A DNA stretch of 64,000 nt from the sequence record MW825358.1. The stretch is one strand, 5' to 3'. Of the stretch, positions 11,420 through 63,056 are shown piece by piece. Both the position numbers and the translations under genes were made by a program. The notes under the pieces were generated by a model, which searched no databases, had not been told where the DNA came from, and saw only the letters and a list, made by a program, of their open reading frames with translations. Every line of letters starts with the position of its first letter. Position 1 is the stretch's first letter.

Positions 11420-13459
11420 ATGTCTCCCAACGAGCTTCCTTTCAATGTGGAGATTTTCCAGCCCACCCAAGCTGTCCTGGACATGCTCAAGCCAGTGTCC
11501 AGCGTGGACTACTACGAGAACACCAAGGGCGATCTCCATGAGGAGGGCCTGTTCTCGATTAGCATCTTCGGACGCATGGGTGATGAAGCGCGCGATAAGC
11601 GTTTCTCCTACATTGACATCAAGACCCAGATTTTCCATCCCATCATTTACAATCGTTTGATCCGTTTGAAGAAGCTCTACCAGGGCATCCTCAATGGTGA
11701 TCAATATGCCGTATGGGACGAGGCGCGCCGTGACTTCTTTCCTGCCAATGCGCTGGAAGGACAAACCGGCTTTGCCTTTTTCTGCGAGCACTGGAAAAAG
11801 ATCCAGTTCAACCGCAACACCTCTGACGTGCGCGAGATGCGTGTCAAGGTCATTGAGAAGTACCGCGATCGGGCCATGACCAGTAAGATCTTGGTGATCC
11901 CGGCGGGTATGCGTGATATTGAGGTGGACGAGAATGGTCGCACCAATGTCAATGAGATCAACGCGCTGTATCGAAAGTTGATTTCAATCTCGCGAGTGTT
12001 GCCAGATAATGCCGAGCCCAATGACCCTAACCAGAATCTGGCCCGGCGGTTATTGCAAGCCTGTTTCAATGATATCTACGATCTGATTGAAACCATGCTC
12101 TCTGGCAAGGAAGGCTTCTTCCAATCTAAGTGGTCCTCACGTAACGTGGTGAACTCCACCCGTAATGTGATCACCGCCATGGATACGTCTGTGGCCAAAC
12201 TCGGTGCGCGCAATGCCCCGCGCTTTACCGATACGATCGTAGGTCTTTGGCAGCTGTCCAAGGCTGTCTTGCCTGTAACGATCCACCACTTGAAAAACGG
12301 CTACCTGTCTGAAGTCTTTGCCTACGGCAATCGTACCGCACGCCTGGTCGATCCGACCACGCTCAAAGCTGAGATGGTCGATGTCTCCCCTGATGCCTTT
12401 GATCGGTGGAACACCGTAGAGGGGTTAGAGCGGGTGGTGTCCAGTTACAAAGAGTTCTCTTTGCGCAGTCGTCCTGTCACTGTCGATGAGCGCTATTTGG
12501 CGCTGTTGTATGCCCCCAAGGGCGCGGCGGTGTTCAAGCTCTTTTCTGACATCGATGAGTTGCCAGAAGGGGCTGACCGTAAAGACGTTCGCCCGGTTAA
12601 CTTGATGGAACTGCTGTACCTGTCTGGGTACAAGATCTGGAATGACCAGGTCGGCACGGTCACCCGCTATCCGGTGACCAACGTGGGCAGTTGCTATCCC
12701 ACCACGGTCTATGTCAAGACCACCGTGGTCGGTGAGATGCGTCGTGAGTTAGGTGATGACTGGCAGCCCCTGCCAGGCGATGAACATCTGGCCCCAGAGT
12801 TCCCCACCTATCAGCCCTTGGCTTATCAAGATAGTCTTGTCATCCCCAGCACCCGTCTTGCGGGTCTGGGAGCCGATAACCTTCTGTGCACAGCAGAAGG
12901 TAAGTCCTGTGCGCTGGCGACGGTGCGCTTGCATTTCCCTTAATTGCTGGGAACCCTTGTTAAACATACAGGCTACAACGTGGGACGAAAGTCCGAGCGT
13001 GAATGCTTGAAAACTGTATGGTAGAGGCAATCAGCAGCTGATCCCCTTTGTGATTCCGCTTTTTAGCGTTGATAGCATGGGGCGAGTTCAACGACTATCC
13101 CGTAGCTGGGAGTACACCGGAATGGCCGGTGGAAATAGGGAAACTTCTCGAATCTGCGTCTGGGCAAAACGCTGCGAGAAGAAGATATAGTCTGGCCTGC
13201 AGGGAGACCTGCAGCAGTGGAGCTGTAGTTGCGGCAGTCACCACGCACCTGAGGGGAAACGACCACAGGTGGAACACATGCGTTTGACGGAGACACGGCC
13301 AGCTTTGTGGCCATCTATACCGATGCCAAGAATGACATCATCAACTACCTGAATAGCAAGCAAGCCTACGTTGATCCCATCGGCGGTATTCGTACCAGTG
13401 CCGGGGTGGATACAGTCAACTTGTTCCTGCGCAGCTTTACCGGTAACCCCGACAGCTGA
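11420..13459 (+). CDS. Virion RNAP beta'-like subunit (phiKZ gp180-like), spliced join(11420..12877,13283..13459), 544 aa
   Basis: Exon 1 ends RLAGLGAD; exon 2 starts FDGDTASFVAI; joining restores the catalytic ADFDGD motif. Also LSGKEG, TRYP motifs of beta'. Confidence 0.92.
12878..13282 (+). mobile_element. Group I self-splicing intron (405 nt, no homing endonuclease ORF)
   Basis: 5' exon ends in U, intron ends in G; P AATTGCTGGGAA (12942), Q AATCAGCAGC (13029), R GTTCAACGACTA (13086), S AAGATATAGTC (13182); removal restores frame and the DFDGD motif. Confidence 0.93.
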
Positions 13460-14889: not shown

Positions 14890-17800
14890 ATGCTCACGTT
14901 TACCCAGCAAGAAGCCGACGTTTCGATCAGCATGGAAGCCATGCCGGTCTATGCGCCGTACTTCCGGCGCTATGGTGTCCTTCGCGCTGTCCAGCTGGCC
15001 ATGCCTAAGCTGAACAAGCTCGAGACTCTGGAGCTGCCTAAAGAGACCATCTTGCATTACATGCCCGAAGATGAGTCTGAATTTGGTTTGGATCAGGACA
15101 ACCCGATTCTGGCCAACAACACTCGCATCTTGATGACCCACCATGTCACCGAGTTGGGAGATAACAAGGGTAACCCGCGCACCTTACCGGTGCCGGCCAA
15201 CCAACTCAAGCGCGAGTACCACCGCAAGAACCGCCGTACCCGTGAGACCACTCGCCCAGAGTCGGTCATGCGCGATCCGGTGACCATTGCCGTGGAGAAC
15301 TATGCGCTGCTCAATCATCTTTATCGCTACCCGATCAACTACTTCCGCAGTTACTACAAGTGGTGGAACACCCAGGCTGCCTTGTGGAAGCGTGCGGGCG
15401 AGCTGGGTCGGGACTATCCCAACCGCCATCAGTTCTTGATGTGCAAGCTACCCACGTTGTTGCCTTCGATCAATTTGCTGCGCCGCGGTGAAGGGGAAAT
15501 GACCCGTAACCTGCTACCCAGCTTTGTTCAGCCTGAAGCGCTGATGGTGCTGGAGCTGTGGAAGTGGTTAGGTCCTAAGCGTGAGGCCTCGGTCCTGTCC
15601 CTGGCCAAGCCCGAACAGCTGCGGCAGATGAACTTGATCTTTGTTGAACAAGATCGTTGGATCGTGCTGAACCTGGGACTGTTGGACCAGTGGCGCAAGC
15701 GTGTGGAAGGCGAGGCCGATTGGCAGACCCATGGCGGTGTGCTCGAACCGATCATGTTGCAAAAGCGCTTCTTGCGCGTGCTGATGACCTTGATGGAAGT
15801 GCGCACGGTCAATGACAGCGATAACGTCCTGGCACCTGCCGCTCAGATTGACACGGCTGAAGTGCCGGTGGAAACCAGCGGAAATGGCGATGGGACCGTG
15901 GGTGATAGCTCCATGCTCGTGGCCCGGGCTGAGCCGGTCAAACTGGCCATCCCCACCGAAGACGGTAAGACCACCAAGGTCAAGCTGACGGCCAATCTGA
16001 ATTTGGATCGCCTGCCTGAGGCTTTGGTGGAGGAAACCGAAGAGAACATTGCCGCTATTGATGATGCCATCACCAAGGACTTAGAAGCGCTGGACCATTT
16101 AATGGCCCGCTTTGAAGAGCGCAAGCAAGATGGGCTGGAAGATTCGCCGGTGGATACCTCCACAGGTGAGGTCGATGCCATGCGCAAGTACGAACCGCAA
16201 AGCCGGACCTTGGAAGGCAGTGTCATGGCCGTGGTGGATATCCAGGCTGATGCCGGGCGGATCTCTGGTGCTGAATACCGGCGCATGAGTGCTTTGTCCA
16301 CCGCCTATCAGCGTTTGCCCAATCCTTTTGGGGAGGGGACCTTGGCTGATATGACCGTGGTGCCGGCAGAGGATCTGATCCTGCCCACCACCGCACAGAT
16401 GCCCGACATGGTCAGCGTGCCGGACAAGACCATGCTCAAGTCCACCATCAGCGACTTTGACAAGCAGTACCTGTCAAAGGTCTATCGCAAGGATCTGGTC
16501 CGCTCGATCTTGGCGGTACAACACGCCGGTGTGGCGGTGACGGGCTTGCAGATGGATGAGTACCGGGATGCTTTAAACCACTATGAAGAATACAGCCTGC
16601 AATTGACGCCGGCGGTGGGTAAGGTCTCTACGGTGAACTTCAAGCTGCCTGTCATTCGTGCCGATGGTACGTATATCGACAACGGAACCCGGTGCCGACT
16701 GCGCAAGCAGCGCGGTGATATGCCGATCCGCAAGATGTCACCGGCCGATGTGGTGCTCACCAGCTATTACGGTAAGCTCTTTGTCTCGCGCTCTGAAAAG
16801 CAAGTACACAACTACCCGGGTTGGCTGACAAACCAGATTGCCGCCCAGGCCATGGATGAGACCAACACCAAGATCACCAATTCGATGATTGCTGATGTGT
16901 CGGATACTGAAATCCGCACCCCGCGTATCTACTCGATGATGGCCGCTCGCTTCCGTTCTTTCCACGTCCATTACCCGGACATGGCCGATTACCAGTTCTT
17001 CTTTGACTACCATGCCCGTGAGGCCGAGTTTGGCAAGGAGCGCGTGGAGGCCGCAGAGCGGGATGGTTTGCTGGTCATCGGTAAGCAAGGGGAGAATCTG
17101 CTGGTGGTGGATAACACCAACACCATCTACCGGGCCCAAGGTCTGGAGCTGGAGACGATCGGGTCGATGGAGACCATCTTGGGTGTGTCGGGTATTGCCC
17201 CCACCGAGATGGCTGAGATCCGGGTGTTCTCTAAGCAGATTCCCATTGGCCTGCTGCTGGCTTATCAGTTGGGCGTGTCTGAGCTGTTCAAGCTCATGGG
17301 CGTAACCCCGCGCAAAGTCCCCACCGGTGTGCGTGCGCACCTGAGCGATGATGAAGTTGCCATTCGCTTTGAAGATGAGATGTGGATCTTCCCGCAAGAC
17401 CGCAGTGCCCGGACCTTGATCCTGTCGGGACTGGCCAGCTATGAGCGCATTACGCGTAACTATCCGGCCTACCTGTTTGATCGCAAGGACATTTACTTCA
17501 ACGTGTTAGAGCAGGCCGGTATTGGACTGCGCTATCTGCGTGAGATGGACATGATGGTGGAGATGTTTGTTGATCCCATCACCGAGGACATCTTGAAGGA
17601 GATGAAAGAGCCGACCGATTTCATTGGTCTGCTACTGCGCGCCTGTCAGCTGCTTGAGACTGATTGGTCTCCGGCTGAGACCGATATGGAACATCAGCGC
17701 TTGAAGGGGTATGAGCGCATTACCGGTACGGTGTATGCGGAGTTGATCAAGGCCATGCGCGTTCAGCGCTCACGCGGCTCCATTGCCAATGCCAAGATTG

Positions 17801-19281
17801 ACTTGCACCCCGATGCGGTGTGGATCAATATCCAACGCGATCCGGCAGTGAAGCTGGTGGAAGAATCCAACCCGGTGCACAACTTGCGCGAGCGAGAGGA
17901 AGTGACCTTCTCTGGTACTGGTGGTCGCAGTGCCCGTTCGATGGTAGCGCGCACCCGCGTGTTCCATAAGAACGACATGGGTGTGATCTCTGAGTCGACC
18001 AAAGACTCGGCGGATGTGGCCATCACGACATTCACCCCGGCCGATCCGACCTTGGTGGACGTGCGTGGTACCACCCGGCGCTTTGATCCGCGCAAAGACG
18101 GCATTACCTCAGTGATGTCCTCCCCTGCCCTGTTGTCTCCGGGCGCAGATCGTGATGATCCCAAGCGTGTGAACTTCATTCCCATCCAGCACAGCTCTGG
18201 TACCTTTGCCAAGGGCTATAAGCCCACTCCGCTGCGCACGGGCTATGAGCGTGTAATGGCACATCGGTGCGATGACATGTTTGCGGTGGCCTCTGAGCAA
18301 GAGGGCACGGTAACGGCGCTGACCGACAAGGGCATGGTGGTGACTTATCTTGACGGGAGCACCCGCTCCATTCAGTTGGGTCGTCGCTTTGGCAAGGCCG
18401 GTTCGATGTCATTCCCGCATCAACTCGCCACCAGCTTAACGCAAGGTCAGTCCTTTAAGAAGGGTGAGATCTTGGCCTACAACGAGCGCTACTTCCAACC
18501 GGATCTGCTGACCCCGGGACAGGTGGTGTGGAAGGCAGGCTTGCTGGTAACCACAGCGATCATGGAAAATCCAGATACTCTGGAAGACTCCTCGGTGATC
18601 TCTGCTGAGGTGGCTGAGGAGCTGGAAACGGAAGTTTCTTCGATTCGCGACATCATTGTCTCCTTCGACCAGGCGGTGCATGGGTTGATTGAACCTGGGA
18701 CCCCGGTCGATATCGATGATATCCTATGTACGATCGAGGACGCCGTCACGGCCGAGAACAACTTGTTTGACGATAGCTCGTTAGATACGTTGCGCTTGAT
18801 TGCCGCCAACACCCCGCGAGCCAAATACAAGGGTGTGGTCGAAAAGGTGGAGGTCTTCTACCATGGTGAGATGGACGACATGTCCGCCACCTTGTCAGAG
18901 ATTGCCAGTGCCTCAGATCGGGATCGTAAGCGTCAAGCCCGTGCGTTGCAGCAACCAGCGCTGACTGGCAAGGTCAATGCATCCACGCGTATCCAAGGCA
19001 GTCCCCTGCCGGTAGACAACTTGCTCATTCGTGTATACATCACCGGACCTGTACCGGCAGGTGTGGGCGATAAGGGTGTGTTTGCCAACCAGATGAAGAC
19101 CGTCTTTGGTCGTGTGATGCACGGCGTGAACGAAACGGCTTCCGGTACACCGTTGGGTGCGATCTTCAGCTACCAGTCCATTTCCAACCGTATTGTGCGG
19201 TCACCGGAAATCATCGGTGTTACCAACACTTTGCTCAAGCTCATTAGTAAACGCGTCGTCAAGGCGTACAAGGAAACCTAA
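14890..19281 (+). CDS. Virion RNAP beta-like subunit, phiKZ gp178-like (1463 aa)
   Basis: RVNFIPIQHS, GVGDKGVFANQMKTV (GDK motif), EDS motif; synteny with beta', small subunit and protease. Confidence 0.92.
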   Translation: MLTFTQQEADVSISMEAMPVYAPYFRRYGVLRAVQLAMPKLNKLETLELPKETILHYMPEDESEFGLDQDNPILANNTRILMTHHVTELGDNKGNPRTLPVPANQLKREYHRKNRRTRETTRPESVMRDPVTIAVENYALLNHLYRYPINYFRSYYKWWNTQAALWKRAGELGRDYPNRHQFLMCKLPTLLPSINLLRRGEGEMTRNLLPSFVQPEALMVLELWKWLGPKREASVLSLAKPEQLRQMNLIFVEQDRWIVLNLGLLDQWRKRVEGEADWQTHGGVLEPIMLQKRFLRVLMTLMEVRTVNDSDNVLAPAAQIDTAEVPVETSGNGDGTVGDSSMLVARAEPVKLAIPTEDGKTTKVKLTANLNLDRLPEALVEETEENIAAIDDAITKDLEALDHLMARFEERKQDGLEDSPVDTSTGEVDAMRKYEPQSRTLEGSVMAVVDIQADAGRISGAEYRRMSALSTAYQRLPNPFGEGTLADMTVVPAEDLILPTTAQMPDMVSVPDKTMLKSTISDFDKQYLSKVYRKDLVRSILAVQHAGVAVTGLQMDEYRDALNHYEEYSLQLTPAVGKVSTVNFKLPVIRADGTYIDNGTRCRLRKQRGDMPIRKMSPADVVLTSYYGKLFVSRSEKQVHNYPGWLTNQIAAQAMDETNTKITNSMIADVSDTEIRTPRIYSMMAARFRSFHVHYPDMADYQFFFDYHAREAEFGKERVEAAERDGLLVIGKQGENLLVVDNTNTIYRAQGLELETIGSMETILGVSGIAPTEMAEIRVFSKQIPIGLLLAYQLGVSELFKLMGVTPRKVPTGVRAHLSDDEVAIRFEDEMWIFPQDRSARTLILSGLASYERITRNYPAYLFDRKDIYFNVLEQAGIGLRYLREMDMMVEMFVDPITEDILKEMKEPTDFIGLLLRACQLLETDWSPAETDMEHQRLKGYERITGTVYAELIKAMRVQRSRGSIANAKIDLHPDAVWINIQRDPAVKLVEESNPVHNLREREEVTFSGTGGRSARSMVARTRVFHKNDMGVISESTKDSADVAITTFTPADPTLVDVRGTTRRFDPRKDGITSVMSSPALLSPGADRDDPKRVNFIPIQHSSGTFAKGYKPTPLRTGYERVMAHRCDDMFAVASEQEGTVTALTDKGMVVTYLDGSTRSIQLGRRFGKAGSMSFPHQLATSLTQGQSFKKGEILAYNERYFQPDLLTPGQVVWKAGLLVTTAIMENPDTLEDSSVISAEVAEELETEVSSIRDIIVSFDQAVHGLIEPGTPVDIDDILCTIEDAVTAENNLFDDSSLDTLRLIAANTPRAKYKGVVEKVEVFYHGEMDDMSATLSEIASASDRDRKRQARALQQPALTGKVNASTRIQGSPLPVDNLLIRVYITGPVPAGVGDKGVFANQMKTVFGRVMHGVNETASGTPLGAIFSYQSISNRIVRSPEIIGVTNTLLKLISKRVVKAYKET

Positions 19282-22453: not shown

Positions 22454-22456
22454 GCA

Positions 22457-22491
22457 GCATAAACGCCCCACCTTCGGGTGGGGCTTTATGT
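22457..22491 (+). terminator. Intrinsic terminator ending the late RNAP/protease operon
   Basis: gcataaa-c-gccccacc-ttcg-ggtggggc-tttatg. Confidence 0.85.
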
Positions 22492-22495
22492 TGTT

Positions 22496-22532
22496 GATTG
22501 AAAAAAGATACACAACCACATTATCCCTATGA
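22496..22532 (+). promoter_or_regulatory. Putative strong early promoter (GATTGAAA-N19-ATCCCTATGA)
   Basis: Same boxes and spacing as the elements at 25479 and 58878. Confidence 0.6.
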
Positions 22533-22584
22533 ATGAGACACCTATACTTTCATTCCCCAGCCACCCAACACAGGAGTGCGTGTC

Positions 22585-22683
22585 ATGTTTGAAACAGCAG
22601 TAGGCAAAGGTCACAGCACCGGCTACGGTGACGGCCTGAGCAACGGTGTCGGCGAAAGCAAGGACATCATCGGTGGTTTCTGA
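22585..22683 (+). CDS. Unannotated 32-aa Gly-rich peptide MFETAVGKGHSTGYGDGLSNGVGESKDIIGGF
   Basis: AGGAG RBS at 22572-22576, ATG 22585, TGA 22683; own upstream promoter motif and downstream terminator. Confidence 0.7.
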   Translation: MFETAVGKGHSTGYGDGLSNGVGESKDIIGGF

Positions 22684-22690
22684 GCAATTC

Positions 22691-22723
22691 TAAAGCCCCT
22701 GTCTTCGGGCAGGGGCTTTATGC
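22691..22723 (+). terminator. Intrinsic terminator after the 32-aa peptide
   Basis: taaagcccctgtc-ttcg-ggcaggggctttatgc. Confidence 0.8.
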
Positions 22724-22802
22724 TCGTCTTCACATTTGATGTAACTTTTGACGTAACCCCGACATTGAGTGGGTCTATTTCCGCGCTCGAGCGCATGCTG
22801 CC

Positions 22803-24080
22803 ATGGAACACTTTTTTCAAAGTTACAACGAGTTGCTGAAAACCAACCCGTTTCTTGCAAGTATCTTACCTGTCTATTTGATGGGTTTGGTTACCTTCGT
22901 CTTGCGTTCTGTTCCGGCACGTATCTGGTCCACCACGCGTAATCAAGCCACCACCACCTTAAGTCTGCTCTCCACCGGTGCCGGCTCTGCGGATATGCAA
23001 TACCACAGTTTCTTGCGCTGGTTTGTGGGGCGTGGGTTTATGAAGTGGTCGCGTTCATTGGCTGTAGAATCGGCCTGGACGCGCAATGCAGATGGTGAGG
23101 TGTTGCCGGGCAATGGCACCCACTACTTCCTGTGGAAGGGTCGGCCGTGCTGGCTGACCAAATCCCGCGTTGAGCAAAGCGGAACGACCAATCAAATCAC
23201 CCATTCCATTACCGTAGGAATGTTGGGGCGTCGCCAAGACCTTCTCAAAGAGATGGTCGAAGAATTTCGTTGGAAGCCCAACAAAGACCGCGGTCATCTG
23301 TTCTATCCAGATGGCGAAGGCTATTGGTGCTCCAGCACCCGCGTATCATTGCGCAACCTAGACTCGGTCATTTTAAATGCCGGAGTCAAGGAAGAGATGA
23401 TCGCCAAAATGCAATGGTTCTTTGAGAACCGTCAGTGGTATACCGATCGCGGCTTGCCCTATCGGTTGGTCATCTTGCTGGAAGGTCCGCCAGGGACAGG
23501 TAAGAGTTCGCTGCTGCGCGCTATTACTTCACACTTCAAGCGTAATCTGTGTCCCATCAATTTGGCAGGCACCTCGGATGAGAAGCTACCCAAGCTGCTG
23601 AGGCAAGTCCCTGATGACTCGTTCATTGTGATGGAAGACTTTGACTCCTGCCCTGCGGTACTCAAGGCAGAATGGCAGTCAGAGAACGCCTCGCCGGTCG
23701 GTCAGATGGCCGAGGCGATCATGCGCCATGGTAAGTCTGCGTTCTTACAGGCCATTGATGGTGTGGATGTGCTCGATGGACAGGTGATCTTCTTAACCAC
23801 CAATTACATTGAGCGCATTGAACCTGCGGTCATTCGCGATGAGCGGGTGAACCACATCATCCATCTGGGTCTGCTGGAGAACGAGGCAATTCATCGTTAT
23901 ATCGCCAAGGTCTTCCCAGATCAACACCGTGAGCCTAAGATGACCTACGCACCGATTGCAGGTGCGACGTTGCAAAAGCTGTACATGCGTCACCACCGTA
24001 CCTATCTGGATTTCGTCTCAGCGATTCCAGTAGCCAACCCCGACACTGTGTCGGATAAACCCCAAGAGGAGATTGTGTAA
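22803..24080 (+). CDS. BCS1-like membrane-anchored AAA+ ATPase (425 aa)
   Basis: N-terminal hydrophobic helix FLASILPVYLMGLVTFVLR; WYTDRGLPYRLVILLEGPPGTGKSS (Walker A), IVMEDFD (Walker B), IFLTTNYIERIEPAVIR (sensor/SRH). Confidence 0.8.
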   Translation: MEHFFQSYNELLKTNPFLASILPVYLMGLVTFVLRSVPARIWSTTRNQATTTLSLLSTGAGSADMQYHSFLRWFVGRGFMKWSRSLAVESAWTRNADGEVLPGNGTHYFLWKGRPCWLTKSRVEQSGTTNQITHSITVGMLGRRQDLLKEMVEEFRWKPNKDRGHLFYPDGEGYWCSSTRVSLRNLDSVILNAGVKEEMIAKMQWFFENRQWYTDRGLPYRLVILLEGPPGTGKSSLLRAITSHFKRNLCPINLAGTSDEKLPKLLRQVPDDSFIVMEDFDSCPAVLKAEWQSENASPVGQMAEAIMRHGKSAFLQAIDGVDVLDGQVIFLTTNYIERIEPAVIRDERVNHIIHLGLLENEAIHRYIAKVFPDQHREPKMTYAPIAGATLQKLYMRHHRTYLDFVSAIPVANPDTVSDKPQEEIV

Positions 24081-25112: not shown

Positions 25113-25477
25113 TTGCAAGGGAACGTATCCAACAGTTCCATGTCGATGTGGATGCCATTCGGATGCGTACACTCGAACGCCTGGAGACGCTAAAAGGACG
25201 AGCAGCAGGACAGGTGTTTGACCTGCAAGGGGCGCAGGATCAAGATCATGAACAGGCCGTGTTACTTCAGTGGCAGATCGCAGATCTGTTGGCCGAACTG
25301 CAAGGGGATGAGCGCTACGCAGTTGAACTGAAGCGCTTGGCCAACTGTTTACTTGACACGCGGGAGATTACCTTGCAAGCCAAGATCCGCGTAGATGAAC
25401 TGGCTATCTGTGAACAATACCTGCCCTGGCCCAAATGGTTTTGGTACCACGCCAGCAAACTTCAGCATCGCCATTAG
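25100..25477 (+). CDS. Hypothetical helical protein (125 aa)
   Basis: GAGG RBS, overlap with the upstream stop. Confidence 0.7.
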   Translation: MEGLIARERIQQFHVDVDAIRMRTLERLETLKGRAAGQVFDLQGAQDQDHEQAVLLQWQIADLLAELQGDERYAVELKRLANCLLDTREITLQAKIRVDELAICEQYLPWPKWFWYHASKLQHRH

Positions 25478-25478
25478 G

Positions 25479-25518
25479 GATTGAAACACATTTAGAACCT
25501 ATACCATCCCTTTGTCAT
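25479..25518 (+). promoter_or_regulatory. Putative strong promoter shared with chmA
   Basis: 33/40 nt ungapped identity to 58878-58917. Confidence 0.75.
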
Positions 25519-25646
25519 AGTAGCGCGAAAGTGTACTGTGGCAGCGCTGCAACAGCTGCAAACCTGTAAAACCTTACCTGGCAGGGTAAGTTAGTGCAGG
25601 ATCTACTAGAAACCTTTTCATTCCAATCGAACAAAGGAAATACCGC

Positions 25647-26141
25647 ATGAGCACTGCAACCGCCACCAAGAAGACCCCGGCCGCCGCCACGACCGAAGTC
25701 AAGATCTCCGATGCCGTCCGCACCCTGGCCGACCTGGTCAGCACCCAGATCACCATCGACAAGGACGGTGTGGCCACCGTGCCGGCCGACTTCTACGAGT
25801 CGACCCTGCCGGAAAACCTGACCATCCAGCAGGTCAAGGCCGTGCAGAAGCATCGCGGCGAGGTGGTCTCGGCTGTGGCCCTGGCCCTGGGCGAGAAGGC
25901 CCTGCCGATCATGAAGAAGAACACCGGCCTGGACAAGGCGACCGTGGGCTTCAAGGTCGGCAACGACAAGAGCGAAGTGGCCGTGCACCGCAGCCGCGAG
26001 TTCGGCGATGGCAAGGGTGGTAAGGTGACCAAGTACGGTTACACCACCATCGAGTACACCGCTTCCGGCGCCACCAATGCCGGCGACTTCAAGAAGGTGC
26101 GTCAGCACACCTCCGACGAGTTCGCCAAGGCTTTCGGTTAA
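25647..26141 (+). CDS. Hypothetical, probably highly abundant protein (164 aa, Lys/Ala/Thr-rich)
   Basis: Extreme C-ending codon bias like chmA and sheath; AAGGAAATA RBS; own terminator. Confidence 0.85.
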   Translation: MSTATATKKTPAAATTEVKISDAVRTLADLVSTQITIDKDGVATVPADFYESTLPENLTIQQVKAVQKHRGEVVSAVALALGEKALPIMKKNTGLDKATVGFKVGNDKSEVAVHRSREFGDGKGGKVTKYGYTTIEYTASGATNAGDFKKVRQHTSDEFAKAFG

Positions 26142-26160
26142 TCCAGCCAGCGGCCGCTTG

Positions 26161-26192
26161 AGCAGCGGGACCTTCGGGTCCCGCTGCTTTTA
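26161..26192 (+). terminator. Intrinsic terminator
   Basis: agcagcgggacc-ttcg-ggtcccgctgct-ttt. Confidence 0.85.
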
Positions 26193-26229
26193 GTTGTATG
26201 TCTCTTTTTTGTAACGGGGAAGGATTTGG

Positions 26230-26397
26230 GTGTCAAACGACCGTCAACATTGCAAGACCATTGACATGGTCCGTCAGCTGGTCACCGAGCGTCACTATAG
26301 CGCCGAACAAGTGGCCATCTTTTTGAACACCAACCTCAAGCGTGCTAAGGCTTTAATCGCTGAGGTCAAACGCCAAGATAACGAGGAGCTGGCTTGA
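26230..26397 (+). CDS. Small HTH-like protein (55 aa, GTG start; not in ORF track)
   Basis: MSNDRQHCKTIDMVRQLVTERHYSAEQVAIFLNTNLKRAKALIAEVK...; GGGGAAGGA RBS; YSAEQVAIFLNTNLKRAK resembles an HTH. Confidence 0.6.
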   Translation: MSNDRQHCKTIDMVRQLVTERHYSAEQVAIFLNTNLKRAKALIAEVKRQDNEELA

Positions 26398-43846: not shown

Positions 43847-43850
43847 GCAT

Positions 43851-43887
43851 CATACAGCCCCTGCCTAAAAGGGCAGGGGTTTTATGC
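43851..43887 (+). terminator. Intrinsic terminator
   Basis: catacagcccctgcct-aaa-agggcaggggttttatgc. Confidence 0.8.
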
Positions 43888-43891
43888 TGTC

Positions 43892-43928
43892 GATTCAAAT
43901 CAGATTCACCGCTATAATACCATGGTGA
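43892..43928 (+). promoter_or_regulatory. Degenerate copy of the chmA-type promoter, contains TATAAT
   Basis: GATTCAAA...TATAATACCATGGTGA; same GATT.AAA-to-TGA spacing as 58878 (about 19/37 identity by eye). Confidence 0.4.
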
Positions 43929-43992
43929 GGCCCTGCGTCATTCAATTGTAATCAATACGATTGAAAGGGAAATCAAACACATACTACGACTA

Positions 43993-44121
43993 TGACAGCG
44001 ATCCTGTACTGCCAACGCGGTGCAGATCGTCACATGCCCTCTATGGTGGGGGTACAGCACAGTGCCTGTCAGACCTGCTAGCCCCAGTCTGGCAGGGTGC
44101 GGGCTGTCTGTATCCCCACCA
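43993..44121 (+). ncRNA. Putative structured RNA / 5' leader with two long hairpins
   Basis: Hairpin 43993-44032 and ~78-nt hairpin 44044-44121 with several G-U pairs. Confidence 0.5.
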
Positions 44122-58877: not shown

Positions 58878-58917
58878 GATTTAAAAACATTTCGAACCCT
58901 TACTATCCCTTTGACAT
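58878..58917 (+). promoter_or_regulatory. Putative chmA promoter
   Basis: GATTTAAAAACATTTCGAACCCTTACTATCCCTTTGACAT; 33/40 identical to 25479-25518. Confidence 0.75.
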
Positions 58918-58990
58918 TGGTAACGAGAAATCGAAACCGGTGTTCGCGCGAACATCAATCGAAAGACTTTTCTACAAGGAAATAAAAAGC

Positions 58991-60934
58991 ATGAGCGTCA
59001 ACGATCGCAACAACCAGAACAACCAGTCGAAGCCGGCCGCCACCGGCAGCAACGAGCAGGTCTTCGGCGAGAGCTTCCAGGGCACCGCCGGTTCCCAGAA
59101 TGCTGGTGCCTCGGCTGGTCGTCCGCAGTCCGGTCGCGCCAACCTGGGCAACGCCCTGGGTCTGCGTGGCGCCGAGCGTCTGCAGGGCCTGCGTACCGGC
59201 ATGGGCCGCAAGCGTGGTTCGGCCGACCTGCAGAAGCTGCGTGACACCCTGATGGAGTCCTTCGCCTCCTTCACCAACTCCCAGGTGATCCCGGAAGCGC
59301 AGAACTTCAAGCTGATCATCATCGACCGCAACCGCCTGAACAAGAAGGTCGACCTGCTGGTGGCCGTGCTGCCGGTGAACATCGGCGGGACCACCCACGC
59401 TGCCATCCACACCCTGCTGCTGGAAGACGCCAACGACAAGTACGATCCCATCACGATGCAGATCGCCGGTCAGACCAAGTACTACAGCACGGTCGTGAGC
59501 GACGTGTATAGCCAGGACCTGTGGGGCACGATCGTCCAGTTCGTCTCCAACGAGGCGGGCGTGAACCTGACCCCGTACGACGCCGGTCACCAGACCCTGC
59601 CGGCCGAGCTGGATGTCACCGACAAGGACACCCTGCACCAGATCGCCTTCTTCGTCACCGAGGCCCTGGTTCGTACCACGATGAACTCGATCACCAAGTC
59701 CAACGACGACATCGTCTCCCTGGACCAGCTGGACGAGAACACCGTGGCGCAGGCCACGATCGACTTCACCAACGTCAACAGCCGTACCGCCGCGGGTCTG
59801 CCGCTGCGTGCCGACTTCGACGTGCAGCTGCGCTACAGCCAGCCGACCAAGTCCGGTGAGAGCCAGACCGAGAAGTCGTTCGACCTGGGTAGCTCCATGC
59901 CGCTGGGCGGCGCCCAGGGCTTCGTGGACATCACCTACGTGATGCCGCCGGCACCGGGCTTCGGTCAGCAGCAGAAGACCCAGCTGTACAAGGCCCTGAT
60001 CGTGCTCACCCGTCTGGACACCGCGCAGGACTTCATCACGCCGGAACTCCAGCTGCTGGCCCTGGCCGGCTCGACCCTGATCAGCCGCAACATGAACTGG
60101 GCTCGCGTGTGGTCGCAGCAGTTCCGTGCCCCGGGTACGGACCTGAACGACATCGGCGCGGTCGGTTACGAGCTGCAGCTGGCTGGCAATGCCGAGCGGA
60201 TCGACACCACCTCGGCGGCGTTCGATGACGTGGCCCTGGCCAAGCTGGTCCAGCTCGCCATCGATCCCAAGCCGGTGATGATGTTCGACGTGGAAGAGTC
60301 CGGTGAGCTGTCCTGGCTGAACCGCATCCTGCTCGACGCCGCCAACGGCTCGGTCGATGCCGGTCGCAGCATCATCCAGGCGGCGGACAACCTGACCGGT
60401 GGCAAGTTCAGCCAGCAGTGGAACGGCGGCGCGACCGATCTGGTCGTGGACGATGGCAACCGCATCCACCTGGGTTACTACACCGACCACAACGGCGACA
60501 AGCGCGACATCCGCGACCTGAGCTACCTGTCGGTCCTGAACCGCTTCGGCGAGCAGGATCTGTCGGTGGTGGAGAAGTGGCAGGAAACCTTCGACGCTCA
60601 GGACATCGACGCCGAAGTGCGCCTGGCCGATCGCGAAGCCCTGATCCGCAAGATCCTCGGCCCGACCGTTCGCATCACTGGCTACGCCCGCCGTCTGGTG
60701 TTCGCACCGGATCTGCTGGATTGCCTGCTCGATGCGGCTGGTGAAGCCGGTCTGCGCATCCGTCCGGAGAACACCCTGGTCGGCTTCGGTACCACCGCAC
60801 AGCGTGGTCGCTCGTTCTACGAGTCGATGGGCTACGGTGGCCAGGGCGGCCGCAACACGTTCTCCTTCTCGGCGGGCGGTAACGGTCGTGGCTTCAACCG
60901 CCAGTTCACCGGCCGTGGTTCGTGGCGCGGTTAA
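58991..60934 (+). CDS. chmA: Chimallin, phage nuclear shell protein (647 aa)
   Basis: Between gp52-like and nvRNAP beta' genes; size; disordered N/Q-rich N-terminus and G/R/F-rich C-terminus; ITPELQLLALA and YARRLVF segments; strongest codon bias in the window. Confidence 0.88.
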   Translation: MSVNDRNNQNNQSKPAATGSNEQVFGESFQGTAGSQNAGASAGRPQSGRANLGNALGLRGAERLQGLRTGMGRKRGSADLQKLRDTLMESFASFTNSQVIPEAQNFKLIIIDRNRLNKKVDLLVAVLPVNIGGTTHAAIHTLLLEDANDKYDPITMQIAGQTKYYSTVVSDVYSQDLWGTIVQFVSNEAGVNLTPYDAGHQTLPAELDVTDKDTLHQIAFFVTEALVRTTMNSITKSNDDIVSLDQLDENTVAQATIDFTNVNSRTAAGLPLRADFDVQLRYSQPTKSGESQTEKSFDLGSSMPLGGAQGFVDITYVMPPAPGFGQQQKTQLYKALIVLTRLDTAQDFITPELQLLALAGSTLISRNMNWARVWSQQFRAPGTDLNDIGAVGYELQLAGNAERIDTTSAAFDDVALAKLVQLAIDPKPVMMFDVEESGELSWLNRILLDAANGSVDAGRSIIQAADNLTGGKFSQQWNGGATDLVVDDGNRIHLGYYTDHNGDKRDIRDLSYLSVLNRFGEQDLSVVEKWQETFDAQDIDAEVRLADREALIRKILGPTVRITGYARRLVFAPDLLDCLLDAAGEAGLRIRPENTLVGFGTTAQRGRSFYESMGYGGQGGRNTFSFSAGGNGRGFNRQFTGRGSWRG

Positions 60935-60967
60935 TACACCACGCGTGAGCGTCGTGTAGATGGCTAG

Positions 60968-61001
60968 GAAAGACCGCCCTTCGGGGCGGTCTTTCTTTTT
61001 T
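60968..61001 (+). terminator. Intrinsic terminator after chmA
   Basis: gaaagaccgccc-ttcg-gggcggtctttc-tttttt. Confidence 0.9.
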
Positions 61002-61184
61002 GCCGCTTAGGTGTAAATTCGAACATCTAAACGTAATAGCATGTCCCTGTTTCGCCGAGTAACTAGGACCTAGAACAAATCGAATACCCGGCAATGCAAC
61101 CGTAGGGGAAGAACCATTGACGCCATTAATCTAAACCCCGAAGAGGTCACCGACACCCCGTATCGCGCCCGCCGGCGTATCGGG

Positions 61185-63056
61185 TTGGATCACAAACGCC
61201 AGTATGATGGTATTGCCATTCGACTGGTGGATCTGGATGAAGTCTTCAACACCGCAGCCACCTTACCGGTGATTGTCAACGCCTTCAATACCGAAACGGT
61301 CGATGATCGTCAGGTGCTGGATTCGTTGATCTACACCCACTATGACGGCGACTCGCTGAACATGGTGCCCACCTGTGAATGCCAGCGCATGCGTGGTGCT
61401 GGTAAGATCGGTCTGGTGTGTCCGCGTTGTGGTGGTACGGTCACGCCCGCCAGCGAACGACCGCTTGAATCACTGCTGTGGTTGGCCCCGCCTGAAGGCG
61501 TGGAAACCTTCATCAATCCCCAAGCCTGGACGATGTTGTCCAAGGCCCTTACCCACGGTGGTATTAATGGACTGGCCTGGTTGTGCGATCCGCACATGCC
61601 AGTGGGTCCTGAACCCCATCGTGAAATCCGTCGCCTGATTGATCAAGGATTTGATCGGGGCATCAACAACTTCTACCAGAACTTTGACACGATCATCGAT
61701 CAGCTGTTTAATATCGGTGTGATTGCAGGGTCTAACCGTCAGCAAAAGGCGGATCTGTACGAGTTCATCAAGGCCAATCGCAAACGCATCTTCTGCAAGC
61801 ACCTGCCAGTGCCTTCGCGGATGGGCTTTGTGACCGAACGCTCGATCACCGGCACCTTTGCCGATTCGACCATGAAGCTGGCCATCGATGCGATCCGTAC
61901 GATCTCCGATACCGTCCACTCGCTGCGTCCGCTGGATCTGGGACGTCGTCAGTCGCGCTCGGTCAAGGCCAATGACCTGATGGCGCAATACCACCAGGAG
62001 TTCATGAGCAGCACGCTCACCTCCAAGCGTGGCTGGTTGCGCAAACACGTGTTCGGCTCCCCGTTGTACTTTACCTTCCGGGCAGTGATTTCCTCGCTGT
62101 CTGATGAGCACGAGTATGATGAGTTGCACCTGCCGTGGGGTGTGGCAGTGTCCACCTATGCACTGCACCTGACCTCGAAGATGTATCGGATGATTAATGA
62201 AGAAACCGGTCGTCCGTTCACACCCAATGAGGTGCTCAAGCATCTGCGTGAGCATACCTTGCGGTATAGCCCCTTGTTGGACCGGCTCTTTGATGAGCTG
62301 ATTGCCGAATGTCCATACAAGGGATTGCCAGTGCTGTTCAACCGTAATCCTTCACTGGACCGCGGTTCGATTCAGCAGTTCTTCGTGACCAAGATCATCA
62401 AAGACCCGGAGATCAACGCCATCTCTATGTCTGTGTTGACGCTTAAGGCTCTTTAACGGGTCCTTCCGACAGTAATGTCGGTCGATCATCTCTCTAATTG
62501 CTGGGACCTCTGACGCCAACTATCTTCGGATAGGCGGACACACTACTAAAGCGGAGTGGGTAACCACAAACGTCCAGTTTAAATAACGTGTGTCTTTTTG
62601 CAGACAATCAGCAGCCAAGCTTCCTAACGGCATTACAAGTAACGTCGCGGTCACATGAAACCGCAGCCTAACAATACGGGTGACGTGAAGTAATTGATGC
62701 GTGGAAGAAGGTTCATCGACTAGCCGAAAGGCGTAGGGTGCAAGCGCATCCGAAATGGGAGACTTCCGCGACGGCGGAAGAAGATATAGTCAGTACCTAG
62801 ATGTGAATCTAGGCGGGAGTCAGCGCTCCGGGTCCGTGTAGCGAACGGATTGGACAAATAGCCAAATGCCGATTTCGACGGCGATGCGCTCAACGGCATG
62901 CCTTTGTTGGACAACCGTCACGCTTACGCCTTCAGTGCACTCGCCCCGCACCAAGGTGTGTTGGATCTGGACCGTCCGCGGGCCATGTCCAAGAACCAGA
63001 TCATGCCGCCTCCGGTGGCTTCCACGATCGCCAACTGGCTTCACCACGGCAAGTAA
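61185..63056 (+). CDS. Non-virion RNAP beta'-like subunit (phiKZ gp55-like), spliced join(61185..62450,62862..63056), ~486 aa; start uncertain
   Basis: Zn finger CECQ...CPRC, LRKHVFGS, FNRNPSL; exon 1 ends LTLKA, exon 2 starts PNADFDGD. Confidence 0.92.
62451..62861 (+). mobile_element. Group I self-splicing intron (411 nt, no homing endonuclease ORF)
   Basis: 5' exon ends in U, intron ends in G; P AATTGCTGGGAC (62496), Q AATCAGCAGC (62606), R GTTCATCGACTA (62711), S AAGATATAGTC (62781). Confidence 0.93.

Follow-up and report, generated by a model that had tools for sequence, protein, structure and literature searches.

Which promoter is formed by a 40-bp element upstream of the gene LUCX_18, and why does a closely similar element stand upstream of LUCX_59, the chimallin (ChmA) gene? 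The window in which both were found comprises bases 1-64000 of Xanthomonas phage vB_XciM_LucasX (accession number, MW825358.1), a jumbo phage of 305,651 bp with Xanthomonas citri as its host. In the GenBank record LUCX_18 (25647-26141) and LUCX_59 (58991-60934) are both labelled 'hypothetical protein', and promoters, the nucleus and the shell are not mentioned in the LucasX paper. LUCX_59 was identified as chimallin by a full-length match to the profile PF25677 (197.8 bits against a cut-off of 27), by a match to phrog_4795, annotated as 'nuclear shell protein', and by tblastn matches to annotated nuclear shell proteins. The element is an instance of the known jumbo-phage early promoter, and is neither a private element of chimallin nor a sigma-70 site. 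We consider it likely that it is a phiKZ-type early promoter which would be read by the multisubunit virion RNA polymerase, and that LUCX_18 is an early protein of the phiKZ gp186 family.

The promoter motif and its copies

The original prediction, made from the letters of the window, had started from the likeness of two 40-mers, and direct comparison confirmed an ungapped identity of 33/40 between 25479-25518 and 58878-58917. An identity of at least 33/40 has a binomial probability of 5e-14 per position pair, or about 1e-4 over all same-strand pairs of the window. The same boxes with a 15-nt spacing had also been claimed at 22496, and a core pattern of fixed spacing, searched with two mismatches or fewer, did find exactly three sites in the window (22498, 25481 and 58880) against 0.14 expected from shuffles. 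The ribosome-binding site (RBS) and start context said to be common to LUCX_18 and chimallin were confirmed by a string search of the genome: the 9-mer RBS string occurs five times on both strands together, a start codon follows it only at these two genes, and the 8-mer context around the ATG after it is identical in both. Their codon bias is extreme, as stated: by G+C content at third codon positions (GC3), LUCX_18 (0.89) and chimallin (0.876) come second and third among 364 crude open reading frames (ORFs), the major capsid protein gene having 0.80 and the median being 0.64. The LUCX_18 product is, as described, a basic protein of 164 aa (pI 9.2). The factual statements of the original prediction thus all hold.

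The LucasX genome was scanned with a weight matrix seeded on the sites of the window and refined in four rounds, using a threshold of 25 bits. At least 27 sites scoring 25-45 bits were found in the 305-kb genome; all 27 lie on the + strand, all 27 are intergenic, and their distance to annotated starts is mostly 33-300 nt. Scores in twenty first-order Markov genomes of the same dinucleotide content, scanned as a control, did not exceed 20 bits, with 0.2 sites at 15 bits or more. The proposed small regulon is replaced by a genome-wide class, with at least 27 copies ahead of many unrelated genes. The site at 43892, which had been called weak, does resemble the two quoted 40-mers less closely, but with 37 bits it fits the genome-wide motif well. 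The window contains six sites, and a seventh, at 64143, falls just outside it.

22496..22535, + strand: early promoter of the C-rich variant, driving LUCX_12, directly after a terminator (matrix scan)
25479..25518, + strand: early promoter of LUCX_18, 34 bits, kept in 8 related phages, in the phiKZ early-promoter register
43892..43931, + strand: early promoter of the general class, first of a tandem pair before LUCX_37, 37 bits
43959..43998, + strand: second tandem early promoter before LUCX_37, 35 bits
47998..48037, + strand: early promoter of the general class before LUCX_43, 37 bits
58878..58917, + strand: early promoter of the chimallin gene, matching the 25479 site at 33/40, same element in RTH11

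The motif spans about 37 bp and is built of boxes at fixed spacing. Counted from the first base of the 40-mer at 25479, these are ATT (columns 2-4), AAA (6-8), a T-run (13-15), A at 17 and 19, an AT-rich block in columns 22-30 (TATA, any base, TA, pyrimidine, C) and TG at 35-36. Columns 2, 4, 6-8, 12, 14-17, 19, 21-25, 27-30, 35-37 (TG, then A) and 41 are each shared by 17-27 of the 27 sites, the columns of the AT-rich block by 18-27. Several sites abut the T-run of the preceding terminator. Two sites lie ahead of RNA polymerase beta-like genes (74837 before LUCX_77-79 and 246570 before LUCX_286-287), at positions that match those of the phiKZ non-virion polymerase genes gp071-074 and gp123, and none of the 27 lies ahead of the capsid, sheath or terminase genes. 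A search for k-mers enriched between genes returned mainly terminator words and did not recover the promoter.

A conserved motif stands before the early operons of every jumbo phage that encodes RNA polymerases, according to a review (PMC7598289). Its AT-rich block measures about 10 nt and has its centre near -10, and the review attributes the motif to the virion RNA polymerase (PMC7598289); Wicke et al. (PMC8244752) reported a T-rich motif upstream of -19. Two starts are described for gp054, the phiKZ chimallin gene: a primary one with the early motif and a secondary one of the middle type (PMC8244752). For comparison, sites were collected from the phiKZ genome (AF399011.1) on an 8-mer block taken from the region upstream of gp054. 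This block has 42 genomic copies, 33 of them on the + strand. Relative to the block, ATT stands at -20 to -18, AAA at -16 to -14, the T-run at -9 to -7, A at -5 and -3, and TG at +13/+14; these offsets are exactly those of the LucasX boxes. The similarity of the LucasX and phiKZ matrices reached 275 at shift 0, none of 24 other shifts giving more than 171. When both strands of LucasX (611 kb scanned) were scored with a matrix made from 24 phiKZ sites alone, the nine best positions were all LucasX motif sites, including 25479 and 22496, with 58878 slightly lower. Since the block is centred near -10, transcription would start at the conserved G of the TG, i.e., at 25514 for LUCX_18 and 58913 for chimallin. 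Stable hairpins begin three bases or fewer from the predicted starts in LUCX_18, chimallin and LUCX_12 and in the orthologous leaders, which fits the predicted positions.

The C-rich variant, LUCX_18 and chimallin

Within the promoter class, a C-rich run followed by T/A-T-G fills columns 30-36 in four of the 27 sites (22496, 25479, 58878 and 64143, preceding LUCX_12, LUCX_18, chimallin and LUCX_65), most other sites having purine-G-T-G there. This is an excess over the 0.2 sites expected (P=5e-5). The orthologue set consisted of Xanthomonas phage RTH11 and seven metagenome contigs, whose LUCX_18-like proteins show only 42-58% identity. In all nine upstream regions (LucasX and eight relatives of LUCX_18) the promoter was found at the same distance and with the C-rich stretch, and it stays at orthologous places while the flanking non-coding DNA has diverged. 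The chimallin gene of RTH11 has the same promoter and leader as that of LucasX. The distinct grouping of chimallin with LUCX_18 was upheld insofar as the four-member C-rich sub-type is real; its members are not all alike, LUCX_65 having ordinary codon usage (GC3 rank 107) and LUCX_12 being an ORF of 32 aa. Separately, two 12/13 matches to the C-rich half were seen on the minus strand (genome 93077, LUCX_92, and 297251, LUCX_323), 8 nt before the start codons and without the upstream boxes. If these were used, the two mRNAs would be almost leaderless. LUCX_92 lies upstream of an RNA polymerase-like gene.

LUCX_18, chimallin and LUCX_12 are each monocistronic, with their own promoter and their own terminator.

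22585..22683, + strand: LUCX_12, 32 aa (annotation), with a terminator at 22684-22730
25514..25646, + strand: predicted 5' leader of LUCX_18, 133 nt, with 5'-terminal, palindromic and two-part hairpins followed by a strong RBS
25647..26141, + strand: LUCX_18, 164 aa, phiKZ gp186 / phrog_9746 / phrog_16459 family (profile match, predicted fold)
26160..26199, + strand: intrinsic terminator of LUCX_18, with a 13-pair stem and a T-rich tail
58913..58990, + strand: predicted leader of the chimallin mRNA, 78 nt, with a 5' hairpin, a GC-rich palindrome and an RBS string identical to that of LUCX_18
58991..60934, + strand: LUCX_59, chimallin (ChmA), 647 aa (Pfam PF25677, 3.3e-58; phrog_4795, 3.4e-83)
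60961..61003, + strand: chimallin terminator (GenBank annotation; stem and T-run visible)

The shared promoter variant, RBS and extreme codon bias, together with the monocistronic units and their own terminators, indicate that LUCX_18 and chimallin are probably co-expressed at a high level. The leader of LUCX_18 is conserved beyond the expectation from coding divergence among nine orthologous leaders. Its 5'-terminal hairpin folds in 9/9 leaders (z -2.0 to -4.1), and its palindromic hairpin carries symmetric changes between phages. In the alignment of the nine leaders, 87.8% of cells are paired, compared with 28-64% when the partners are slid, and seven compensatory cells were counted, a number reached in 0/500 shuffles. 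We grade the leader as a probable conserved structured RNA, not higher, because nine related sequences are few. Rfam holds no family for the LUCX_18 leader; the only match was a sub-threshold CRISPR-repeat hit overlapping the promoter, which was taken as chance.

Several further features of these units were recorded. The chimallin leader starts with a hairpin and contains, some 29-40 nt downstream of the predicted start, a perfect GC-rich palindrome of 12 nt; RTH11 retains both elements, and its first hairpin differs by one compensatory change. LUCX_12 is a Gly-rich 32-aa ORF standing alone between a chimallin-type promoter and a terminator (22496-22730), with a 5' hairpin that begins at the predicted start, and the unit could specify a small protein or an RNA of about 200 nt. 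PHROG searches returned nothing for LUCX_12, LUCX_65 or LUCX_120. The gene neighbourhood (22803-24080) keeps its order in every relative examined, with LUCX_18 flanked by a BCS1-like AAA ATPase (LUCX_13) and a DUF488-N3a protein.

The LUCX_18 protein matched four PHROGs without assigned function, the best being phrog_9746 (4e-24), with phrog_16459 at 4e-9. A profile hidden Markov model (HMM) of the family, run over all phiKZ ORFs, gave a single match, PHIKZ186 (200099-200503), at 5.8e-13, and PHIKZ186 is listed as phrog_16459 in the supplement of Gerovac et al. (PMC10914614). LUCX_18 is a member of the phiKZ gp186 family on account of this match and the shared phrog_16459. Eighteen close relatives came from a word search, and a profile search gave 1135 clusters (at 50% identity) with E<=1e-3, of which 617 reach E<=1e-10. 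By tblastn the family was found in jumbo phages of Erwinia (RAY, Ea35-70), Serratia (PCH45), Salmonella, Burkholderia, Ralstonia and Klebsiella, and one Bacillus phage also has a member; tblastn with LUCX_18 or with a shorter relative did not reach phiKZ. The Bacillus member is encoded by phage AgentSmith (200 kb; MW749006.1, 73995-74366), so that the gp186 family may extend beyond chimallin-encoding phages. A metagenome protein of 1595 aa was also seen to contain eight copies of the LUCX_18/gp186 domain.

In the AlphaFold model of LUCX_18 (pLDDT 81.5), the first 20 or so residues form a disordered tail, and the remainder comprises short helices, one helix of 32 residues, three long strands in antiparallel arrangement and a helix at the C terminus. 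No Pfam family and no PDB sequence at E<=10 matched LUCX_18, and a search of the model against PDB structures gave a best E of 0.03 with a TM of 0.2. An actin-capping-protein fold was considered from these PDB rows and rejected at TM 0.2. In Foldseek the model matched jumbo-phage homologues at E 2.5e-13 to 1e-5, all unnamed, in Eowyn, PhiEaH1, Noxifer, Psa21, KTN4, Phabio and RSF1. No sequence or fold likeness to ChmB, ChmC, PicA/Imp or nucleoid and DNA-binding proteins was found in the Pfam, PDB and fold searches. The close clade of LUCX_18 has a pI of 8.7-9.35, the median over 167 family members being 7.9; phiKZ gp186 has a pI of 4.3, and RAY gp173, the orthologue of LUCX_18 in this Erwinia phage, a pI of 4.9. 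Because the basic charge is not conserved across the gp186 family, it does not support a role in the nucleus or on DNA.

Published data on phiKZ show how a distant member of the family is expressed. In replicate 1 of the phiKZ RNA-seq of Gerovac et al. (PMC10914614), the successive values for gp186 are 0.4, 174, 467, 903, 1749 and 1971, and those for chimallin 0.5, 166, 435, 927, 1770 and 1831; the second replicate agrees as closely. The 9 nt that precede the AT-rich block divide the early promoters of phiKZ into two subtypes, the promoters before gp054 and gp185 belonging to one and those before gp005, gp105 and gp260 to the other. Nine genes were compared with the same RNA-seq data, and the ratio of the first to the last infected time point was 0.30-0.32 for gp005, gp105 and gp260 and 0.09-0.16 for the slower subtype (gp036, gp054, gp068, gp121, gp185.1 and gp186). 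Consistently, the mRNAs of PhiKZ014, -105 and -216 are reported to accumulate faster than those of the non-virion polymerase and ChmA (PMC10914614). The near-identical time courses and the common promoter subtype indicate that chimallin and a gp186-family gene are co-expressed in a second, distant phage. This co-expression is that of a timing class which includes polymerase genes, not of a nucleus-specific set.

Knock-down with antisense oligomers of the 'early expressed transcript PhiKZ186' strongly lowers plaque counts (bioRxiv 10.1101/2024.07.31.605949), and the main text of a transposon-mutagenesis preprint does not mention gp186. In gradient proteomics of phiKZ, gp186 is most abundant in fraction 3, about 1% of it being pelleted as against 34% of chimallin, and PhiKZ014 travels with ribosomes (PMC10914614). 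The suggestion that the 164-aa protein is shell- or DNA-associated was not borne out: the basic pI is confined to the close clade, no such fold was found, and gp186 sediments lightly. The indirect evidence leans against a stable association of LUCX_18 with the shell or with DNA, and the idea of co-regulation survives in weaker form. The furthest that we would go is that LUCX_18 would be a soluble early protein made together with the shell protein, and that its phiKZ relative is important for plaque formation.

The C-rich variant might instead mark a dedicated 'nucleus establishment' sub-regulon of chimallin, LUCX_18, LUCX_12 and LUCX_65, timed or boosted together by the stretch before the start, with LUCX_18 working with chimallin, for example as an assembly or maturation factor. 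The excess of the variant among the 27 promoters and its retention before the LUCX_18 orthologues of eight relatives and before the RTH11 chimallin would suit such a set, as would the 9-mer RBS string and top GC3 ranks that LUCX_18 and chimallin alone share; LUCX_65, with its ordinary codon usage, fits it poorly. The promoters of phiKZ gp054 and gp185-186 do share a subtype and its kinetics; that subtype, however, also holds gp068, gp121 and gp036, which makes it a timing class rather than a nucleus class, and the variable part lies upstream of the AT-rich block in the phiKZ subtypes but downstream of it in the LucasX variant. The knock-down phenotype of gp186 counts in favour of the sub-regulon, yet the protein does not co-sediment with pelleted chimallin. 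A dedicated sub-regulon is judged unlikely. Also unlikely is a proposal in which the gp186 family would be a widespread early factor that distant nucleus-forming phages co-regulate with chimallin and require while the compartment is being established, its synthesis in the Xanthomonas clade being further controlled by the structured 5' leader.

The polymerase and the remaining alternatives

Three RNA polymerase beta-like subunits are encoded in the window.

11420..12943, + strand: second RNA polymerase beta-like subunit gene (phrog_2986 at 1e-183)
14890..19281, + strand: 1463-aa RNA polymerase beta-like subunit, homologue of the phiKZ gp178 family (phrog_3148, E=0, full length)
61185..62456, + strand: LUCX_60, RNA polymerase beta-like subunit, directly after chimallin (phrog_2987 at 3e-129)

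In the supplement of Gerovac et al. (PMC10914614) the entry 'PHIKZ178 - vRNAP beta' carries phrog_3148, and we infer that the product of 14890..19281 belongs to the enzyme that reads the LucasX early promoters. Among the attributes of jumbo-phage early promoters, the AT-rich block, upstream boxes at a fixed distance, numerous copies with a strand bias and an encoded virion polymerase are present in LucasX. The order of chimallin and LUCX_60 is that of phiKZ gp054 and gp055, which are paired in the chimallivirus core-gene table; the region between the two LucasX genes (61003-61185) contains a possible promoter with no clean fit to the motif.

The element could alternatively be a middle-class promoter for the non-virion phage RNA polymerase, or be read by both phage enzymes, given that phiKZ gp054 combines an early-type primary start with a middle-type secondary start (PMC8244752) and that the mRNAs of phiKZ ChmA and gp186 rise more slowly than the fastest early mRNAs (first/last ratio, 0.09 vs 0.30). 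The LucasX motif, however, aligns with the phiKZ early motif and not with the weak middle motif near -22/-24 (PMC7598289, PMC8244752), and it precedes the non-virion polymerase-like genes, which cannot need their own product at the outset. We regard a middle-class promoter as improbable.

A sigma-70-like core that the host RNA polymerase could read had been offered as one way of using the element. Its first box does look like a -35 hexamer, and part of the AT-rich block like a -10 hexamer, but the spacer between them is 15 nt, and a scan of 25300-26300 for the sigma-70 consensus at 16-18 nt spacing gave no match. Conserved columns extend beyond the two hexamers (the T-run, the flanking A's and the TG at 35-36), and the G of the -35-like box is not conserved over the 27 sites. 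The architecture is moreover that of the phiKZ early promoters, which are assigned to the virion enzyme (PMC7598289). The sigma-70 reading fails on the 15-nt spacer, the empty scan and the conserved columns unlike two hexamers, and a host promoter is very improbable. That the 33/40 match is a leftover of local duplication or chance, without function, could be entertained while only two sequences had been compared, and is refuted by the window-wide probability, by 27 same-orientation copies before genes and by retention of the element at orthologous places within diverged flanking non-coding DNA.

Several points weigh against the reading of the element as a phiKZ-type early promoter and of LUCX_18 as an early protein of the gp186 family. 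The weight matrix was trained on the sites that it scores, so that their scores are flattered; the strand, placement and cross-phage results are independent of this training. The start site, timing and polymerase in LucasX are assigned by analogy with phiKZ, and the two phages are distant (chimallin about 28% identical), so that their likeness could in principle be a convergent AT-rich architecture. The gp186 gene of phiKZ is not monocistronic but the third in the operon gp185-185.1-186, and the protein intensity of gp186 (log10 10.02) is about 60-fold lower than that of chimallin (11.78; PMC10914614). This low intensity, together with the lack of pelleting with large assemblies, argues against a stoichiometric shell partner. 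RAY gp173 is absent from the published list of 68 chimallivirus core genes. The 'gp173' in the table of Prichard et al. was checked and proved to be the gene of Goslar; RAY gp173 is not mentioned by Prichard et al.

Taken as a whole, the virion RNA polymerase would enter the cell with the DNA and read the LucasX early promoters in place of the host sigma-70 enzyme, and the at least 27 promoters would serve blocks of early genes on the + strand. Chimallin and LUCX_18 are self-contained units, each with a promoter, a hairpin-capped leader, an identical strong RBS, host-adapted codons and a terminator, an anatomy which suggests that these genes are made early and in quantity. LUCX_18, as a small soluble alpha/beta protein, would by our best guess act during the establishment of infection, when the shell is built.

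Other observations concern promoters and genes elsewhere. The tandem promoters before LUCX_37 (43892-43998) lie 67 nt apart and are followed by a leader of about 170-240 nt; the first adjoins the preceding terminator (43847-43891). Many LucasX terminators share one kind of break in the T-run (TTTATGC...), and it is common for the following promoter to begin at the very next base.

22454-22496, 22684-22740, 43847-43891 and genome 174925: examples of terminators with the interrupted T-run

At genome 173409-173456 a terminator and an early promoter of 35 bits overlap the annotated start of LUCX_192, and translation probably begins further downstream. The highest GC3 in the genome (0.913) belongs to the part of LUCX_120 from 117415 (annotated at genome 117319-117762). 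Its RBS resembles the ones ahead of LUCX_18 and chimallin, which makes it probable that the true start lies 96 nt downstream of the annotated one and that expression of the gene is high.

LucasX was published without promoter annotation, and a map of 27 predicted early transcription units is now available for it. The phiKZ early-promoter architecture is kept box for box at 55% G+C and about 28% chimallin identity, which should help in annotating the early genes of other nucleus-forming phages from sequence alone. An anonymous 164-aa gene is tied to phiKZ gp186, with its chimallin-tracking transcript and knock-down phenotype, and the family is worth characterising. The conserved leader RNA offers a small additional lead on post-transcriptional control in LucasX-like phages.

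Comparison with known systems

The closest known counterparts of the element are the early promoters of phiKZ, with which it shares the boxes and their offsets (an AT-rich block of 8-9 nt and a TG 5 nt later), the strand bias and the placement, including that before chimallin. It differs from them in having C or T in the block where phiKZ has T, in ending the block with pyrimidine-C, and in surroundings that are far more G+C-rich. The variant positions differ too: that of LucasX chimallin and LUCX_18 falls between block and start, and those of the phiKZ subtypes before the block. With bacterial sigma-70 promoters the likeness is superficial, being limited to the -35-like and -10-like hexamers, and the 15-nt spacing and extra conserved columns set the element apart.

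LUCX_18 itself resembles phiKZ gp186 and RAY gp173 by profile (5.8e-13) and by predicted fold (through the homologues of KTN4, Phabio and Psa21). Compared with phiKZ gp186 it is 30 residues longer, basic instead of acidic, and equipped with a conserved Thr/Ala-rich N-terminal tail; its gene is monocistronic, with its own promoter and a structured leader, whereas gp186 is the third gene of an operon. With PhiKZ014, an abundant early ribosome-binding protein (PDB 8CD1), LUCX_18 has in common that both would be early and well expressed, of small or medium size and of unknown ancestry. It differs from PhiKZ014 in that LUCX_18 has no sequence or fold match in the PDB, and in that gp186 is found in the light fractions and PhiKZ014 with the ribosomes.

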